DNA of 63,951 bases, the filler included, from Reticulomyxa filosa (Eukaryota > Protista > Foraminifera), in the NCBI GenBank assembly GCA_000512085.1. It is 26 parts of 26 records of this genome, joined end to end, with 100 filler letters (N's around TTAATTAATTAA, not from the genome) between each part and the next. Parts side by side here need not be neighbours in the genome. Positions count along the whole stretch, not along the records: positions 18,016 to 20,312 come from ASPP01018238.1; 25 more parts are not named here. The stretch is one strand, 5' to 3'. The translations under genes were made by a program, and so were the position numbers. Of this stretch, positions 3,383-20,312 are shown piece after piece. A model generated the notes under the pieces. The model saw nothing but the letters and a program-made list of their open reading frames with translations, was not told the origin of the DNA and made no database searches. Numbering within the stretch: position 1 is the first letter of the stretch; each line of letters opens with the position of its first letter.

Positions 3383-6038
3383 ATGACGAATGATATTAAA
3401 TAATCAAAATCAACAATTGGATCAACAAGAATAAAAGCAAATACTGGATTGCTAAAAGAAGAGTTGAAAATGGAATACGAGACAAGAACGAAAATATCGC
3501 TAACATGGATAAATCAAGCGAGAATATTCACAGAGAAATTCGAAAAGAAAGTTTCAAAACTCAGAAAACTCCAAGAGGTTCAAAGGGACCAAACAAAAAA
3601 ATAACTCTTTAAATCAGTTTCTTAAAGTTTTTTACCTTTAATCTTAAGTGCGAAAACACGCAGGTTAGTTTTAATTATCCAAAAGTGCAATTAAAGGTTT
3701 AACATTAAACAAATAAACTTGACAGCTTTGAGTCCAGAAGGAGCAAAAGAAACCTAATTGCACAGAAACTTTCAAAACTAAAAAAAAATTTTCTCAACTA
3801 GTAAAATTAGTTGACAACCAGTAAAGATAATGATAGAAGAAAATAAAAAAGATACACCAAATCTAAATGAACAAACAACAAACAGAAAACAGAAAAACGT
3901 ACCGAACAATGAAACCAGAAACAAAGACCATACAAAGAAAAATGATTCCAGGAATGATGACCAATCCAATAAAAATGAATCCAGGAACGAAGACCAGTCA
4001 AATAAAAAAAACGACTCCAGAAATGAAGACTAGTCTACAAAAAAAAACGACTCCGGAAAAAATGACTTCAGAACAAATACAGAACACAGCTCAGGCGACA
4101 ATATAAACAAAATAACCTTCGCAGAAAAAGCAACGAAACAAAAGATAGGTATGACAATGAAAATACAAGATACTGAATGGAATGAAGCATGGGAAATTAA
4201 TGACAAAGAAAGTGACACACACAAGATCACAAGAATTACAAATATACAAGGAAAAGAACTCAGCATAAAATGGCTCAAGGAAACGCAAGGTCTAGAGCTT
4301 AAAGTTGAACATGACAAGAAAATAATCATATCAGTCAAGCAAGAACGGATTAAAGAAATAGCAATGCAATCATCACTGGAATCACATACAAAGTAATTAT
4401 AATACAAGTAAAGAAGTTCCACAACGAAAGAATAAACATAGAAAGAATAATACAAGACAGAAAGTAATTAAAGTAATCAAAGAAAAAAATAACAATGATG
4501 AAATGGAAATTTGGTACATGATATCAGAAAACGAAATAAATACACTAATGGAAAGCAGGAAATATAATTATCAGGAACAACTAAAAATACGAACAAACAG
4601 CGTCAGATTAGTTCAAGCAAAGGAGAACCTGGAATTTCAAAAAAAGACTGGTTAAATGATATAAGAAAACAAAAGGAAACACAAATACAAAATCAAAGAA
4701 GTCATAACAGGAAGAGCAAACTCTCAACATAAGACAACAAACAATGCAAAGACAAAGACTGGAACAAAATCTGATTAACAGCAACACAACTACACTCCAA
4801 TAAGAAGCAACAACGTATCACAAAGAATAGAAGAAGGAAAAGAAAAAAATAAAATAATCAATAAATACAAAGGAATACTATCACAAAACATAAATGAAAT
4901 AAAAGAAAAACACAAAATTAACAAAATAACAACAAACCAAGGAGAAAATGAAGAAAAACTGCCCAATATAGAGGAGGGAACAAACGAAGAAGAAATAAAC
5001 GAAGATGAATACATAATCAATAAACAATACTACAACAATAACGAAGAAAGTTCGAAAGAATACTCAGATAGCTCGGACGACGAAGAAAGTAAACAAGACA
5101 GAAGAAATGAACAACTTTATTAAAGAAAATAAATTAGAAGCAAATATGGAATCATGGGACATCAACGAATCAGACTTTAATAAGAAAGGAAAACTAAAAG
5201 TACAAATACTACAGGAGGACAACAGCAAATACAGACTATGCACCAAATGTAAACACCTCAACTTCAAAGAAAAAGGAAACTATCTTGACAGAAACAAATG
5301 TGACCAGTGTGATAATATACTAGAAACCAAAAGAAATGGCTAAGCAGAATAGGACTAAGCAAAATATGCCAAAATTGTGAAGAAATCATGCCTGTGGACA
5401 TAAAAAAATGCAGAAAATATCAATACATGTATGAAAAACTAGAATCATGTAAAGAATGCAACAGAGCCATTAGATACAAAGAAGGACAATGCACAGATTG
5501 CACAGCAGATCAAAACAGGAAAAACAATACAATGGGACAATCAAAGTAACACGAAACGAATAAAGAAAACCAATTACTACAAGACGTAATACAAGAAACA
5601 GAGAACACAAAAGAACTATCACAATTAATACTTCAACAAATAGAAACAAAAACAAAACGGAAGAAATCACACAATCAAGTTGAAATAGAAACGAAACAAT
5701 AAAAGAAATAGACAACTAGAAAGATTATTGAAATTCATAAAAAATATGAAACAACAATAGTAGATATACAATAAGGAAGAATCAACAGAAATCAATATTT
5801 AGAAAAAATAGCACAGTGGAACGCAAAAAAAGAAATGGTATATTAATAATAATCCAACACAAATCGGTGAAATATTTGTGATTAACACTGATGAAAAAGA
5901 AAGATGGGGAAAACCACTATACCTATCAGCAAAGATAATATGGAATCTGCTCAAAGACAAAAGAGATATACAAATAGAAGAAAATAATGAATTTCAATAC
6001 AATATAAAAGAAATAATGAAAACAAGCGAGAAAATTAT
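3383..6038 (+). pseudogene. Decayed, intron-less A-rich ORF with several CxxC pairs; probable transposon ORF (ORF1/gag-like)
   Basis: Strong A skew on +. Many short ORFs are broken by stops and frameshifts. CTKC/CDQC/CQNC/CKEC/CTDC pairs cluster at ~5240-5505. No host-type introns seen. Confidence 0.4.
3905..4070 (+). repeat. ~33-36 bp coding tandem repeat (NDSRNEDQSNK-like), about 5 copies
   Basis: Repeated aatgaNtccaggaaNgaNgaccaNtc units. One copy has CAG->TAG at 4031. Confidence 0.8.
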
Positions 6039-6256
6039 CCTTGAGCCATTTTATGCTGAGTTCTTTTCCTTGTATATTTGTCACTTTCTTTGTCATTAAT
6101 TTCCCATGCTTCATTCCATTCAGTATCTTGTATTTTCATTGTCATACCTATCTTTTGTTTCGTTGCTTTTTCTGCGAAGGTTATTTTGTTTATATTGTCG
6201 CCTGAGCTGTGTTCTGTATTTGTTCTGAAGTCATTTTTTCCGGAGTCGTTTTTTTT
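6039..6256 (-). repeat. Inverted copy of ~4040-4280 with a small internal deletion
   Basis: 6039 ccttgagccattttatgctgag... is the reverse complement of ~4260-4280. Identity continues to the contig end, and the ORF track shows the same SLSLISHASFHSVSC... peptide on both strands. Confidence 0.9.
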
Positions 6257-10038: not shown

Positions 10039-10855
10039 ATGTTATCTCGTTGTGTACAATTTAATCTTTCTCCTTCGCTAGGTAAATACGAACATCAAAC
10101 AAAACTCTTTATTTTATTGTACTTGTTTTTGATATGTCAAGATTTTTAGTATTGTGGCAAACCAAACAGGCACAAGAGTGCTATGCCAAAATGGCCGCCG
10201 TTTCGCAACATCAACAAAAGATAAAGCAGCCCAGCGTGACGCAGAAAGATTAAAAGGGTTAACGCTGACAAAAGCACAAGTTGAAGAGGCTATGAAAGCC
10301 CATTACGATGAAGAAGGAAGTTATTCTCCTCCACATGCGAGTACATTTCCTTCCATTGACAGAAGAGCATGCTTGATGAACTTGCGAATCCCACCATTGG
10401 GAATTACTCCACCACCATTTGGAGACGAGCAATTCAAAGAAGTTTTGTTATATTTCGGCTTCAAAATGAAGCTCTTCACAATGGAAAGTGAATGTATATA
10501 TTTTAATAAAAGTCTTCAAAAGAGCAGTGTTATATGTGTTTATATAAAATGTACATGAAACGGATTTGAACAAACGAAAAAAAAATACCGATCATATTTT
10601 TGACTTGCAAAAAAACAGATCGAGCAGAAGACAACATTACGACGAGATAACTTGCAATGGGACAGAGACCATTGGACGGATGACGCATTACAACCTGACG
10701 AAAAGAATGTCGATGTCATAATTGATGACATTCAAGAAATGTACAAAAAAGGTGTATCATTTGCTACTATCAATTTGTTCATTGATTGGTTTTCAGGTGC
10801 TGACAAAGGCTACAAACACGCCATTTACAACAAAACATGGGCAAGAATTGAATAA
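10039..10855 (+). CDS. Uncharacterised protein with predicted mitochondrial presequence (3+ exons)
   Basis: Splicing 10039-10053 / 10142-10441 / ~10619-10855 (GT..AG, phase 0) gives MLSRCIFSIVANQTGTRVLCQNGRRFATST..., an Arg-rich N-terminus with no acidic residues. Confidence 0.6.
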
Positions 10856-11230
10856 CTATTTTTCATTCCTTTTATTTGTCCTGTTTTTTCTCCCAAATTG
10901 TTTTGTTCATTCGTTTGGGGTTTTCGTACAAACATTTTTTTATTCATCTCCAATATGGAATGGAGATGATTTATAACACACAAAAAAAAAAAAGGTGACC
11001 ACCTTTTGTTAAATAAGCTGTGTTTTTTTTTATATTGATGTTTCTTCAAAACACGAAATCTCTACTCTTTTACATACTGATAAAACACTATATTGCGATG
11101 CAAAGCAAGATTTTGAGCTTTAACAAGGCATAATAATTGTATTTTTTCTTTGCATTAGGAGTGTCTCCTTGTGTTAAGAATTTTTTTTTTCTTTGCAAAA
11201 AAAAAAAAAAAAAAAGATCCCAACGAACGT

Positions 11231-12433
11231 TTAAGCCATGTTACAACACCAGAAAGCAAAATTGATTTCTTTAGATGTAAACAAAAGCAAATTGAAATGA
11301 GGACGAGGGTGTGAAGTGTTTTATTTACCAGGCAACATTCTGTCAATGCTGCGTTTGCTTGATGAGTCTTTCCATTCGTAATGCTGAATTGCCTCAATAT
11401 CTTCGTTGCCAAGCTCAGCAACATGTCTCCAGACATCTTCATTCCAATGGTCATGGAAGGCAATGTCCAGCTTCCAATTGGGGACATAGCCATCACTGAA
11501 TTTGTTGATAATATTGTAAGGCCAGTCCATGAGATAATCAAATGAGGACTTGTTCATCATTCTCATCAAGTCTTCAATTTTGACTTTCAACTCTTCTTCA
11601 AATCTTTTTTTCAGGGCCAACCATTCCGTGTAGTCACCAATGCGCAGCGTCTCATGACGAAGCAATGTCTGCAAAAAAAAAAATTAATCGGATATGGTCC
11701 ATATGTGATGAATGTTTTAATGATGCAACAAAAGCGAAACAAACAAACAAATGAAAATATTGTGGAGACATAACAATGTAACGGGCTCTCCACTTTTCAA
11801 TCTCTTGCTTGGTTTGATATTCATCCGTACTTCTCTCAATCCAAGACTCGGCATAACTTGTGAGTCCGACTCTATGATTAAATGCCCGTTTCGGTGCATG
11901 GTTGATGTATCGCATAAATGCAACACTTGCAGGCCCATCCCAAGGATCTGTCATTTTGTTTGTTTGTTATTTCTTTTTTTTACATTTGTTTTTTTTGTTC
12001 AGTGTTTGAGTACATTAGTCGTAGATAATGTTCCTTTTTTTTTTACAACACAAAAGTTCGCATCAAGGTATTTTTTTTTTTTTGAAGTTTCTTTCGCAAA
12101 GAGTCCTTTTTTTTTTTTTTCTCCCCTCCTCTTCCATCTTCGATTTTGATATGCCAATACTTAACACAAGTTTGGATCAGGATCCTCCCACATATCCAAG
12201 GCTTCTTCTAAGTCTTTCATCAGCGTTTGTACCTCTCCAGGGTCTGTCATGGTTCGGCATTTCTCGAATTCCTTGCGGCAGTGATAACCAAACCAGTCCC
12301 ACCATCTGTAGTCGTAACGAAGAATTTGCTTCGACCATTTCATTGTTCGACGATACAAATTTTTCACTGCATTGTAGTGTTCCAGCGAACCAAGCTTCGC
12401 CACCTGAGGTATCGGTTTGTGCTGATAAGGCAT
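11231..12433 (-). CDS. NDUFB9: Complex I LYR-family subunit NDUFB9 (B22) with C-terminal extension, 4 exons, ~272 aa
   Basis: Exons 12433-12166, 11947-11775, 11668-11329 and 11268-11231 are all GT-AG and in frame. The protein has an LYR motif (VKNLYRRTMK), R.EFE, and a spliced DPDPNLYPWDGPASVAFMR matching the B22 'PDPY..PW.PGGS.F.R' motif. Confidence 0.8.
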
Positions 12434-12805
12434 TTGGAGGGTTTTTTAATAATTTATTAAAGTGCCAACTTTTTTTTTTTTTTCTGTCTTGTCAAATTTC
12501 AAGCAAGCAGAAAAATGTGATATCAAAATTGTTTAAAAATTTAAATAATTGTATGTTTTGACTATTCATATTGGAACTAAATTTAAGTTAATCATCGCTC
12601 TTCTAAGCAGTTTTGTGTAATCTGATTTGTATTATTCTTTGCATTTTGTTTGGTAAGGCTCGAAAAACCCACAAAAAGCTTTTAAAAAAGAAAAACCATT
12701 GAAAAATTTTCAAATTGAAATGTGTTATCAAAACTTAAAAAACACGAAAAACAAAATTTTGAAAGCAAAGCTTAAAAAATTTTGCTTGGCCCCTCTGTCG
12801 GAATC

Positions 12806-13319
12806 ATGTCCATTGAAAACGGAGACGGAAGAGGAAGTGCGGATAAATTGATGAATGCCATTCGAGTGGCATTAGATAATCAAGTTGGAGATAAAAATCG
12901 CCGCCAACAAGCGGAAGAATACTTAAACCAACTGCGAGACTCCCCGACAGGGTGGCAGCGTTGTGTGGATGTATTTATGAAAACGAAAGAGCCAAAAGTA
13001 TTGTTTTGGTGTCTCCATGTGTTTGAAACAGTAATAAAAAAACGGTAAACTAGAACTTTTTATAGATATGTATATCGTGTATTTTTTGTATGTAAATTCT
13101 TTTCCAAAGACTCAATAAAGAAAACAATTAATGTTGCACCTTTTTTTTTTTTTTCATTCCTAACACATAACAAAAAAAAAAACAAAAAAAAACATAATTT
13201 GAACCAAAAACATGGAACACAAAGATGGAACGAATTGACAAATAACGATAAAAAATGCATAGCATCACTATTATTGGGTTTTATTCGCGAAGTTTGTTCT
13301 GTTGAAAATGTTCCAGAAT
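12806..13319 (+). CDS. XPOT: Exportin-T (importin-beta family) N-terminal exons, partial
   Basis: RQQAEEYLNQLRDSPTGWQRC...VLFWCLHVFETVI is the IBN_N region typical of Xpo-t/Los1. Intron 13045-13224; the next exon reads WNELTNNDKKCI. Confidence 0.65.
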
Positions 13320-13404: not shown

Positions 13405-14172
13405 NNNNNNNNNNNNNNNNNNNNNNNNNNNNNNNNNNNNNNNNNNNNTTAATTAATTAANNNNNNNNNNNNNNNNNNNNNNNNNNNNNNNNNNNNNNNN
13501 NNNNGCTTGCAGACAAACTGGAATCTCCGCTGGATATTGAGGCAAATATGCCAAATCCAGATTTTCATATGGAATTCCATACTGTTTTCAGAACAACACA
13601 CATCTGTCCGAGTTTGGCCAGGTTTGAGACTGTTCACTTTCTGCATCTCCTTTCCCCCCCCCCCCCTCCTTGTTGACAGACTAGTTTTAATACAAGTACA
13701 ACTTCCACGAACCATAATGTGAGGTCTAATCAATACGTATGATAGATATCAAAACTCTGATGCAATCTTCTCGATTTCGTTCCAAATTTTTTTTAAAAAA
13801 AAACTTTGGCTAAAAATACAGTCTGTTTTTAATCTCTTTAAAAACTTGGAGGCTTAGCAAAGGTGGTAGAGCTTAGTGACAACTCACACATCTTTGTTGT
13901 CATTGGTGAGCTCAAAGTTACCTTTCGACTATTTGCGAATACCAACATCTTTTTCAAACACGTTTTTTTCATAAGTGTTAAAGCATACTTTTTTTTTTTT
14001 GTGACGGAAAAAATTATCTTAAAAACAAAAGCTTTTTTGAGGTGTCGAAAAAGGTAAAAGAGTTGGTACACAGAATAACTTCACATATCTTGGTACTCAA
14101 TAATTGCTTGGACCATAATTTACAAAAACAAAGCAATAATAATAATAATAATAAAAAACAAATCAAAAATTC

Positions 14173-18015: not shown

Positions 18016-20312
18016 TCCTGCAATTGATTGATTGTATTTGGATCGTAGCATACTGATTGGCATGGGGTTAATGCCTTGAATGCTTTAGCTAGCTCCCCTA
18101 ATGACGCAAGCTTAATTGCTTTTGCGTGTGTTGAGTCCGGCTTTGGCCCTGTCGGAGGCTCTTTTTTCCTTCTGTTGGTTGGTTTGGGAAGTGCCTCTGA
18201 GTGCGTGCAAAATTCCTCCCATAATTTCTTGATGTTATCTTCCTTCCATAACTTAATTCTGTTGATGATTATTTTTGTTGTTGTATTCGTATGTTTGATC
18301 CCTCCTCTGCCTGGGTCCCATAGGATCAACCTACACAATAATAACCACTTTGTCCATGAGCCAATATTATTGTTATTTGATATGTCTCGTAATGTCCATG
18401 CTGCGACAGATGCGAATGCGCTTCGCGCGGCTTTGGGTACACGGGCGATAATTTTCGCTGGTTTGTTGATAATTTCTTCCATAGATGGGATTTGCCATGC
18501 TCCAATCGCTTCTGGATATTTTTGTTCCAAATGCTGCTGTCTGTCAATAATGACTTGTTGTGCATTTTGTTGATCAATCCATTGCTCGCGGCATTTCCTA
18601 TGCATATTGTCCACTGCTACAGATATTGGGAGTGTGCGGCTGCACCGGTAACATATGACTCTTCCAAACGCTTGAAAATACGTCGATGGCACTTGGCCCT
18701 TTGAGTGGTCTGCAATGTGGCCATTGACGTGAAGGTGCAAGCCTGCCTCTGTTTTGAATGATGATTGACAGCCAAAGACCGGACACTGGAGAATGCTCTG
18801 CGTGTGCTGGTCAGGTGGTGGAGGTTGTTGAGGTGGACTTGTTGGTGGCAATGTAATATTGTCAAATAATTCGTCTTGCTCAAATGAATGTTAGAATGGA
18901 AGATGTTGGTTGGCGTTGTTGTCTTGTGGTTCCGAATCGCCGATGCTTCGAGCCCGTGCTACTTGGGTGTTAAATGACTCCGCATTGATATACTGCATCT
19001 GATGTTCGTCAGGGTCTTGGTCTCCGCCGATCAGCTCAACATGCTGTGACATCGTGTCCTGTGAAGGTCGAATGGATTCTTCTTTGATATCGAGGTTGTC
19101 AGTGCCGCCCTGCAACCTTTGAGACGTTGTTATGACTTTCGGTATCATAATATCTGGAATGAGTCGACAATATTGATTGGTTTCCGGTGCTTGTTGGGGC
19201 GCATATACGGTATCATGGTCCGATGAATGCGCTTGGGTCAGTTGATGGGTTTTTTGTGGCAGCTCACTTCCATGCTTAGGCATATTTGCATTCGGTGCAT
19301 TGAGTGCGGGGGTTGATAATGCTCCTGATGGAGATGAGTTGCATGCTATAATGGATGGCTCCTTGTGTGGAATGACGACGTATGAAATATCAGCTGCGAA
19401 CTGGAGGGTATCATTGGCATGGGATGCAGCATTAATAGCCGGATTAATGGCAAATAAAATGGAAAAGTTTGATATTTTTGTCAAACAAGATAACAATGCC
19501 TTCCTCCATTCACTAAACCACGTTGTTGACGATAATTAACCTTGAATTTGCTATAATTCTTTAATATATCCCTGAATTGCTTTATCATTAATGCATTACA
19601 AGATGATTCCAAACTAAAGAAATTTTCTACTCGAGCATGTAATTGTTTTTTTGAATTAAAAGATGGGAATGGTACATTACTTGAAAACTCACACACCAAG
19701 TCGAAAAGAAAAATATTGCTTTTCATTTGAAGCATTTGCACTCCATTGTTGATATGATTTTGGCAAATTGCAATATCATATATTGTGTGTCCATGAATTG
19801 ATTGGTATCCATATGTTTGATTTTGCTCCGGATTCTGTGGATAGAGGTGGGATGCATTTTTAATGTCGATTAATAAATTCTCGATATCAATGCTGTTGCC
19901 AATGACTCTCTCTGATAACTTCGAAAGATTAATGGAGGAATGTCCTTTCTTTTGATGATTGGATGAGGCTTGCGTGTTGCATGTATCTAATAAATCAAAT
20001 ACACGAATCTTGGAACATTCGTTCCGTAATATTCCCTCGCGGACACTTTTATTACTATGCTAGCCGCTTGTGTGCCATCCTTTAATTTGTCCACAATATA
20101 TTTCAAAACTGGTGATATCATACCCCCTGCACGTGGTGATGAAGGCGAAGAATTGACTATTGGATGATGACCGTATAAGCAAATCATATCCGAATAGCCG
20201 TTGAGTGCATTTGCAACAATTGGCCCCACAATTTCCGGTACGATCTGGATAATCCCGCTTGATGCATTGAATACTTTGTCAAACACGTAATAGTTACCCC
20301 CCTTCGCAGTAA
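18016..20312 (-). mobile_element. Decayed CRE-like non-LTR retrotransposon ORF with N-terminal kinesin motor-like domain (both ends truncated by contig)
   Basis: Intron-less 2.3 kb. Order: kinesin-like motifs at 20310-19390, a linker, a C2H2 finger (CPVFGC-x12-H-x3-H), CYRC..HRKC, then RVPKAARSAFA / WTKWLLLCRLIL..PGRGG / RIKLW / AIKLASLGELAKA, the region preceding RT in CRE-clade elements. Two 1-nt frameshifts (~20012, ~19520) and one in-frame TAA (18891-18893). Confidence 0.7.

Follow-up and report, generated by a model that had tools for sequence, protein, structure and literature searches.

Has a kinesin motor domain become part of a retrotransposon without long terminal repeats (a non-LTR retrotransposon) in the foraminiferan Reticulomyxa filosa, or does a kinesin-like gene of the host simply lie beside one? 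The question is raised by positions 18016–20312 of the window, by which we mean the whole stretch of joined parts of assembly GCA_000512085.1 that was analysed, 63,951 nucleotides (nt) with its filler. A sequence-only reading of this locus had proposed that a kinesin-like domain shares one open reading frame (ORF) with the zinc fingers of a long interspersed nuclear element (LINE). It had pointed to a kinesin profile search, a structure prediction, a search for further copies extending into a reverse transcriptase (RT) and a restriction-like endonuclease (RLE), and substitution rates across copies as ways of judging the proposal. We find that the kinesin–LINE fusion is real, recurrent and selected, and that the locus in the window is a dead copy of an ATPase-dead subfamily. 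It very probably represents an inactivated copy of a poly(A)-tailed R. filosa non-LTR family in which the kinesin domain belongs to the transcribed, translated and retrotransposed unit and is not a neighbouring host gene.

Kinesin-like and retrotransposon parts of one reading frame

The minus strand of 18016–20312 carries a single frame of about 765 codons, split by two 1-nt deletions and one stop codon; the piece has no N inside it and is flanked by N filler on both sides. Its stop-free pieces lie in three frames, at 19990–20310 (piece 1, 107 residues), 19484–20059 (piece 2, 192 residues), 18894–19535 (214 residues) and 18018–18890 (291 residues), and were searched one by one, as separate unjoined frames. 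Alignment with the related R. filosa contigs L001 and L004 confirms both the single frame and its interruptions, which the sequence-only reading had placed at ~20012, ~19520 and 18891–18893, within a few bases of the aligned sites. Neither deletion lies at a long homopolymer. The window copy is thus dead, with three lesions (two frameshifts and one nonsense codon), and both of its ends are cut by the contig. Its features, in the order of translation, are:

19374–20310, minus strand: kinesin-motor-derived domain, spread over three frames, its N-terminal side lost at the piece edge (PF00225, PDB, paralogue alignment and fold)
20149–20172, minus strand: P-loop remnant GHHPIVNS, where L003 copy 1 has GQTGSGKT; the Walker A GK[ST] is gone (alignments)
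20015..20016, minus strand: loss of 1 nt that causes frameshift 1 (from the alignment with L001 and L004)
19787–19801, minus strand: switch I remnant SIHGH, canonically SSRSH and SSRGH in sister subfamilies (alignments)
19685–19702, minus strand: switch II remnant DLVCEF, canonically DLAGSE (alignments)
19515..19516, minus strand: loss of 1 nt that causes frameshift 2 (from the alignment with L001 and L004)
18894–19373, minus strand: low-complexity Ser/Pro/Gln-rich linker of ~160 residues from motor to zinc fingers (translation; homologous linker in P0003)
18891–18893, minus strand: in-frame TAA, a CAA-to-TAA nonsense change (CAA in L001 and L007, CAG in L004)
18868–18912, minus strand: conserved block of ~45 nt around SFEQDELF, kept in 4/4 aligned copies, at which relatedness switches from L004-like to L007-like
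18717–18785, minus strand: C2H2-type zinc finger CPVFGC...HLHVNGH (CPV..C...H...H kept across 13 aligned relatives; weak YY1/AEBP2 finger matches)
18591–18653, minus strand: second Cys/His motif, CxxC...H..C (translation and conserved columns among relatives)
18018–18590, minus strand: conserved pre-RT (N-terminal) domain of the LINE ORF, ending at the piece edge just before the RT (283 homologues)

The kinesin motif order claimed for the first ~300 residues is supported by three kinds of evidence. First, the Pfam family Kinesin (PF00225) matches piece 1 over profile positions 41–137 (E 4e-5, 23.2 bits) and piece 2 over positions 137–232 (E 0.03, 13.6 bits). The two matches are abutting and collinear, and each singly lies under the 29.3-bit cut-off; the paralogues L002 and P0008 score 86–90 bits. 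Secondly, 76/76 PDB sequence matches of piece 1 are kinesins, and the alignment with Kip3 places the window's GHHPIVNS opposite the P-loop GATGCGKT. A word-based search with piece 2 returned one protein, P0001, named 'kinesin, partial [Reticulomyxa filosa]', which is 71% identical and itself carries PF00225. Thirdly, evidence on the fold comes from an AlphaFold model of the paralogue L001:185-1306, which is 68–72% identical to the window pieces. This model has a mean pLDDT (predicted local distance difference test) of 69 and a pTM (predicted template modelling score) of 0.73, with low confidence at the former P-loop, and in Foldseek it retrieves kinesin motors only (E 2e-16, probability 1.00, TM 0.65–0.69). 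By the collinear Pfam matches and the fold of the paralogue, the first ~310 codons of the window copy are assigned to a kinesin motor domain. An NCBIfam scan gave noise only, a metagenome scan starting from the kinesin side found no relative, and a protein-homologue search with the kinesin region of L002 returned only L002 itself.

The nucleotide-binding motifs have not survived in this subfamily. The P-loop pattern GxxxxGK[ST] is absent, with GHHPIVNS in the window and GQHASANS in P0001, and neither switch I SSRSH nor switch II DxxGxE is found, SIHGH and DLVCEF standing in their places. Retained, according to the motif alignment, are the YG.N...FDLL strand, the alpha-4 region, the YR...R stretch and the TLQFA helix.

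Beyond the motor, the linker, zinc fingers and pre-RT block of a LINE that had been read from the sequence are seen in the translation, in columns conserved among relatives and in homologues. Family searches with the linker (18894–19373) gave no match. An exhaustive HMMER search with the finger/pre-RT domain gives 283 proteins at E <= 0.001, many of them with RVT_1; the closest are R. filosa proteins that run into RVT_1, and others come from dinoflagellates and metagenomes. Contigs of GCA_000512085.1 contain relatives up to 96% identical to the window, which confirms the foraminiferan host considered in the sequence-only reading. One of these, L007, shows 96.4% identity over 894 nt without a gap and runs on into RT. 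The window piece itself ends before the RT, and RVT_1 is found in L007, L002, L004, L006 and L090.

A 13-sequence profile of the finger region and RT finds R2 retrotransposon proteins first (E 3e-24) and LINE-1 ORF2p next; a phmmer search of P0005:520-1477 against the PDB gave no match. The endonuclease was called from motifs read in the sequence of P0005 and from their conservation: CCHC, RHD and PGD...D motifs stand at the C-terminal end of this intact ORF of 1477 residues, and the CCHC/endonuclease region is conserved in L002, L003, L004, L008 and L090. The element is accordingly classed, from its sequence, as a putative RLE-bearing, R2-like non-LTR retrotransposon. With R2 proteins as the best solved relatives of the RT, 'RLE-bearing, R2-like' appears to be the only class label supported, rather than the 'CRE-type' first suggested. 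P0005 (L006:96-4526) is the ORF of a sister subfamily, 1477 codons long and open to the contig start, with fingers, RT and endonuclease; its first 537 residues contain a repeated NIQQ-type coiled-coil-like stretch.

Recurrence of the fusion and limits of the mobile unit

The in-frame order of kinesin, linker, fingers, RT and CCHC/restriction-like endonuclease recurs on six R. filosa contigs, or seven with the window. L002 (ASPP01002760) has an uninterrupted ORF of 1199 codons with Kinesin (E 2e-24), Microtub_bd, a zinc finger and the start of RVT_1. L004 has a 696-codon ORF running from kinesin through linker and fingers, followed by the RT and endonuclease region, and L005/P0004 has kinesin, a linker of ~300 residues, fingers and RT. 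L001 extends from kinesin through the linker to a terminal SFEQDE motif and overlaps the start of L007 at 95% identity, and L090 keeps a kinesin remnant with SSRGH, then linker, fingers, RT and endonuclease. Three further copies of the same order lie on L003 (ENA ERZ25039484 contig_74177), a 16-kb contig unrelated to the R. filosa contigs. The kinesin part is thus found in at least three diverged R. filosa subfamilies and on an independent ENA contig.

This recurrence bears on whether the join is an artefact, that is, a chimeric contig or a gene model in which a kinesin pseudogene was merged with a retroelement next to it. In favour of an artefact are the strong fragmentation of the R. filosa assembly, the predicted introns in several of the NCBI gene models concerned, and the mosaic relatedness of the window copy described below, which could stem from a cross-over during assembly at the conserved block. 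Against this, the order is present on the seven independent R. filosa contigs and three times on the ENA contig, and intron-free, continuous ORFs of 1199, 696 and 638 codons span kinesin and fingers. We consider an artefact extremely unlikely. On each of the points at which the sequence-only reading could have failed, the result went its way: a kinesin fold is present, other copies carry the kinesin part, and RT follows it in homologous copies, with the co-occurrence extending into RT and RLE on both the R. filosa contigs and the ENA contig.

L003 places the kinesin domain inside a mobile unit. Copies 1 and 2 have a common 3' untranslated region (3'UTR) followed by poly(A); copy 2 has a run of 17 A, and copy 1 has at least 14 up to the contig edge. 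An intervening element situated directly upstream of copy 3 ends in a third instance of this 3'UTR, with ~19–21 A. This element and copies 1 and 3 share their start sequence, which comes directly after an A-run, and the DNA preceding the A-run of copy 1 is unrelated. The unit measures ~6.1 kb, and ~1.2 kb of it precedes the kinesin. The first base of copy 2 falls within the motor, past the P-loop position, and the copy extends from there to its poly(A), as in a classic 5'-truncated LINE copy. L002 also ends in an A-run at its contig end, ~300 nt past the stop codon.

Several points weigh against a kinesin domain carried by the R. filosa element. The unit boundaries are seen on the ENA contig and not on R. 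filosa contigs, which are too short to reveal a 5' end or a target-site duplication. In two of the R. filosa subfamilies, the stretch ahead of the fingers (537 residues in L006, 263 in L008) shows no kinesin. The window copy is a mosaic: its kinesin and linker are nearest to L004 (pS, the synonymous difference, ~0.3–0.4), but its finger domain has saturated synonymous sites relative to L004 and is 96% identical to L007, and the kinesin of L001, the partner upstream of L007, is 74% identical to the window's. Taken alone, the window contig could be an assembly chimera across the ~45-nt conserved block. Finally, the window subfamily, having lost the P-loop and switch II, is predicted to be incapable of working as a motor.

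The mosaic could be explained by repeated in-frame insertion of a site-specific RLE element close to the 3' end of multicopy host kinesin-like genes, in which case the kinesin would be host DNA. R2-type elements are known for site specificity, often for one target sequence, and in the window, L001/L007 and L004 divergence jumps where the linker meets the fingers, the exact place of the ~45-nt conserved block. On L003, however, copies 1 and 3 change divergence at the motor end and not at the linker/finger junction, and the units have their start, directly after an A-run, upstream of the kinesin and their end at a poly(A), with copy 2 truncated inside the motor. The kinesin-to-finger junctions are all in frame, which implies that one mRNA encodes both parts and that a self-copied mRNA would carry the kinesin. 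A search from the kinesin side yielded a single relative, P0001, and this too leads into the element. Repeated site-specific insertion appears highly improbable, and the mosaic is better accounted for by recombination, or by RT template switching, between subfamilies expressed together.

Absence of the kinesin among more distant relatives was recorded within narrow limits. No kinesin match was found in 80 environmental RT relatives, only 13 of which have at least 2.5 kb upstream, many of the contigs being ~3.4–3.8 kb long with fingers near the start. For the long database relatives P0016, P0025 and P0053, Pfam gives RVT_1 only, and several other database relatives have their fingers within ~10–160 residues of the N-terminus.

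Further observations concern the organization of L003. A ~2.3-kb element between copies 2 and 3 (10641–12946) shares its first ~195 nt and its 3'UTR and poly(A) with the kinesin–LINE and contains an unrelated ORF of 494 codons (10970–12451), for whose product neither Pfam nor the ESM Atlas gave a match; it may be a non-autonomous partner using the LINE ends. At 6111–6137, copies 1 and 2 stand head to head and share an A/T run of ~27 nt at their 5' junction, and elsewhere on the contig a poly(A) directly precedes each new unit. Insertion at A/T tracts thus seems to be preferred, which would explain the head-to-tail arrays. Copies 1 and 3 have, upstream of their motor (5100–5400 on the minus strand, and 13560–13700), a CPIxxCGK...H finger-like motif resembling the finger after the linker; this region is broken by frameshifts.

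Others concern the N-terminal side of the R. filosa copies. Relative to L001, L004 has an internal deletion of ~526 nt (L004:918-974) through which the motor has lost its N-terminal half, P-loop region included; two stop codons remain. We rejected a 5' truncation inside the motor for this copy, since its N-terminal peptide block is still present upstream. That block of ~52 nt (L001:92-142, L004:855-917, L005:3539-3592) is 88–90% identical among copies whose coding regions are 66–77% identical, is in frame and encodes the conserved N-terminal peptide DPRxSCxxYTADAxxDT. A 5'UTR hairpin or ribozyme was considered for it and rejected, as Rfam was blank and the block is in frame and coding. The annotated starts of P0001 and P0004 lie 34–45 codons downstream of it, and the real start codon is at L005:3539. 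In L005:3641-4984, the NCBI model P0004 treats as an intron 28 codons lying precisely at the degenerate P-loop region, where the DNA is contiguous with the rest of the motor.

Selection on the motor domain and its possible role

Selection was assessed from nonsynonymous (pN) and synonymous differences by Nei–Gojobori counts on protein-guided codon alignments, with bootstrap 95% confidence intervals in brackets. For the kinesin part the values are:

Window versus L004: pN 0.041, pS 0.336, pN/pS 0.12 (0.07–0.19)
Window versus L001: pN 0.155, pS 0.693, pN/pS 0.22 (0.17–0.28)
L001 versus L004: pN 0.149, pS 0.643, pN/pS 0.23 (0.18–0.30)
L001 versus L005: pN 0.349, pS 0.731, pN/pS 0.48 (0.41–0.55)
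L003 copy 1 versus copy 3: pN 0.174, pS 0.473, pN/pS 0.37 (0.29–0.45)
L003 copy 1 versus copy 2: pN 0.312, pS 0.630, pN/pS 0.50 (0.40–0.60)

The comparison of substitution rates thus gives pN/pS of 0.12–0.50 with all intervals below 1, and the kinesin part is under purifying selection, the ATPase-dead subfamily included. The linker, at 0.43 between the window and L004, is less constrained than the kinesin part. Low pN/pS although most of the sampled copies are broken implies that most of the divergence arose in coding, selected lineages. This is the pattern of a transposon, and it too counts against site-specific insertion beside host genes.

These values also bear on the view that the kinesin part has no function and is carried as a passenger, a host exon picked up in a single transduction and now decaying. 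The loss of P-loop and switch II in the window subfamily would agree with decay, as would the possible lack of kinesin in L006 and L008. A decaying passenger is hard to reconcile, however, with a domain kept in the three or more diverged subfamilies and on the ENA contig, with pN/pS ratios that stay below 1 and, in the window–L004 pair, below the linker value, with the fold preserved in the model, or with the canonical ATPase motifs of L003 copy 1. We regard the passenger view as quite improbable.

The ATPase motifs of the family form a series. They are canonical in L003 copy 1 (GQTGSGKT, SSRGH, DCAGS/DCAGSS), partial in L002 (GHSDSGKT, with a degenerate switch II) and lost in the window group. 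All kinesin-bearing subfamilies have E.YG.N where EIYNE is canonical, and a G in SSRGH/SIHGH where SSRSH is canonical. Because these derived E.YG.N and SxxGH characters are common to all of them, the sequences suggest one capture of the kinesin domain. The best solved matches are the chromokinesin KIF4 for L002 and the mitotic kinesins-8 and -5 for L003.

From these elements a mechanism can be proposed for the family. The family ORF comprises a short N-terminal region, the kinesin-derived domain, a disordered linker, C2H2-type fingers and pre-RT domain, RT, and CCHC motif with restriction-like endonuclease. Like other LINE proteins, its product would bind in cis to the RNA that encodes it. Target-primed reverse transcription is established for R2 and LINE-1, and integration would presumably proceed in the same way here. 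The kinesin-like head could tie the ribonucleoprotein (RNP) to the microtubules of the giant syncytial cell or move it along them. This arrangement would suit a giant syncytium in which microtubule-based transport is fast (PMC2113829; PMC13371060). Lineages with GQTGSGKT/SSRGH (the ENA contig) or GHSDSGKT (L002) may still hydrolyse ATP, and the head may be motile there. In the window subfamily the domain could serve only as a nucleotide-independent (static, nucleotide-free-like) binder of microtubules or tubulin, or in some other constrained role. Access to the spindle or to chromosomes is an alternative role, suggested by the best matches of L002 and L003 to KIF4 and to kinesins-8 and -5, respectively.

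With somewhat more doubt than conviction, we propose that a lineage of foraminiferan LINEs may encode its own microtubule-binding head, perhaps an active ATPase in some branches and a selected, ATPase-dead 'rigor-like' binder in others, that carries or anchors the RNP on microtubules or the spindle. This would be the first transposon-encoded cytoskeletal motor, and part of the Reticulomyxa kinesin expansion would consist of transposon copies. If the domain does bind microtubules, it offers a concrete answer to how a retroelement RNP reaches the nuclei of a centimetre-scale syncytium. The canonical, partly degenerate and ATPase-dead heads, all under selection, provide a natural series for study.

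Annotation and comparison with known systems

NCBI names element-borne ORFs as host kinesins: ETO34218 of L002 is 'kinesin family member 4', P0001 of L001 is 'kinesin, partial', and L090:1-866 is annotated as a PF00225 gene model. Because of this naming, R. filosa kinesin-gene counts include retrotransposon copies. As cited in PMC4758236, the amplification of the R. filosa kinesin complement has been interpreted as an adaptation to transport in a huge cell. Kinesin–LINE copies probably inflate this reported 'kinesin expansion', and the complement needs a re-count after removal of RT-linked copies. The sequence-only reading had known of no described kinesin-bearing element; in agreement with this, a full-text literature search, with the R. 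filosa genome paper outside it, found no paper linking a kinesin domain to a reverse transcriptase or a non-LTR element.

The closest comparison is with R2 and the other RLE-bearing non-LTR elements (the R2, CRE, NeSL, R4 and Hero groups). Likenesses are the single long ORF, N-terminal C2H2-type fingers, C-terminal CCHC and RHD/PD...D motifs, a 3'UTR with poly(A), 5'-truncated copies and an RT nearest to that of R2. In contrast to those elements, a kinesin-derived domain of ~330 residues and a linker of 130–300 residues stand before the fingers here, and the copies on the ENA contig sit at A/T runs, in head-to-tail arrays.

Compared with N-terminal-motor kinesins, of which KIF4, KIF11/Eg5 and the kinesin-8 Kip3 are the best solved matches, the element has PF00225, the motif order and the fold in common. 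It differs in having no coiled-coil stalk or cargo tail, its 'tail' being a LINE protein. In addition, the window subfamily is without P-loop and switch II, and all element copies have E.YG.N and SxxGH.

LINE families do gain accessory domains, such as the esterase domain of some ORF1 proteins (PMC3905857). There, as here, a host-derived domain has been added to a non-LTR element and kept under selection, but in the present case the addition is a cytoskeletal motor domain, and it is joined to the very protein that contains the RT. In viruses and retroelements that travel by means of host motors, kinesin or dynein is recruited through adaptors. The proposed purpose is alike, namely to bring a nucleoprotein along microtubules toward nuclei; the kinesin–LINE, unlike these, would encode the microtubule-binding head itself.

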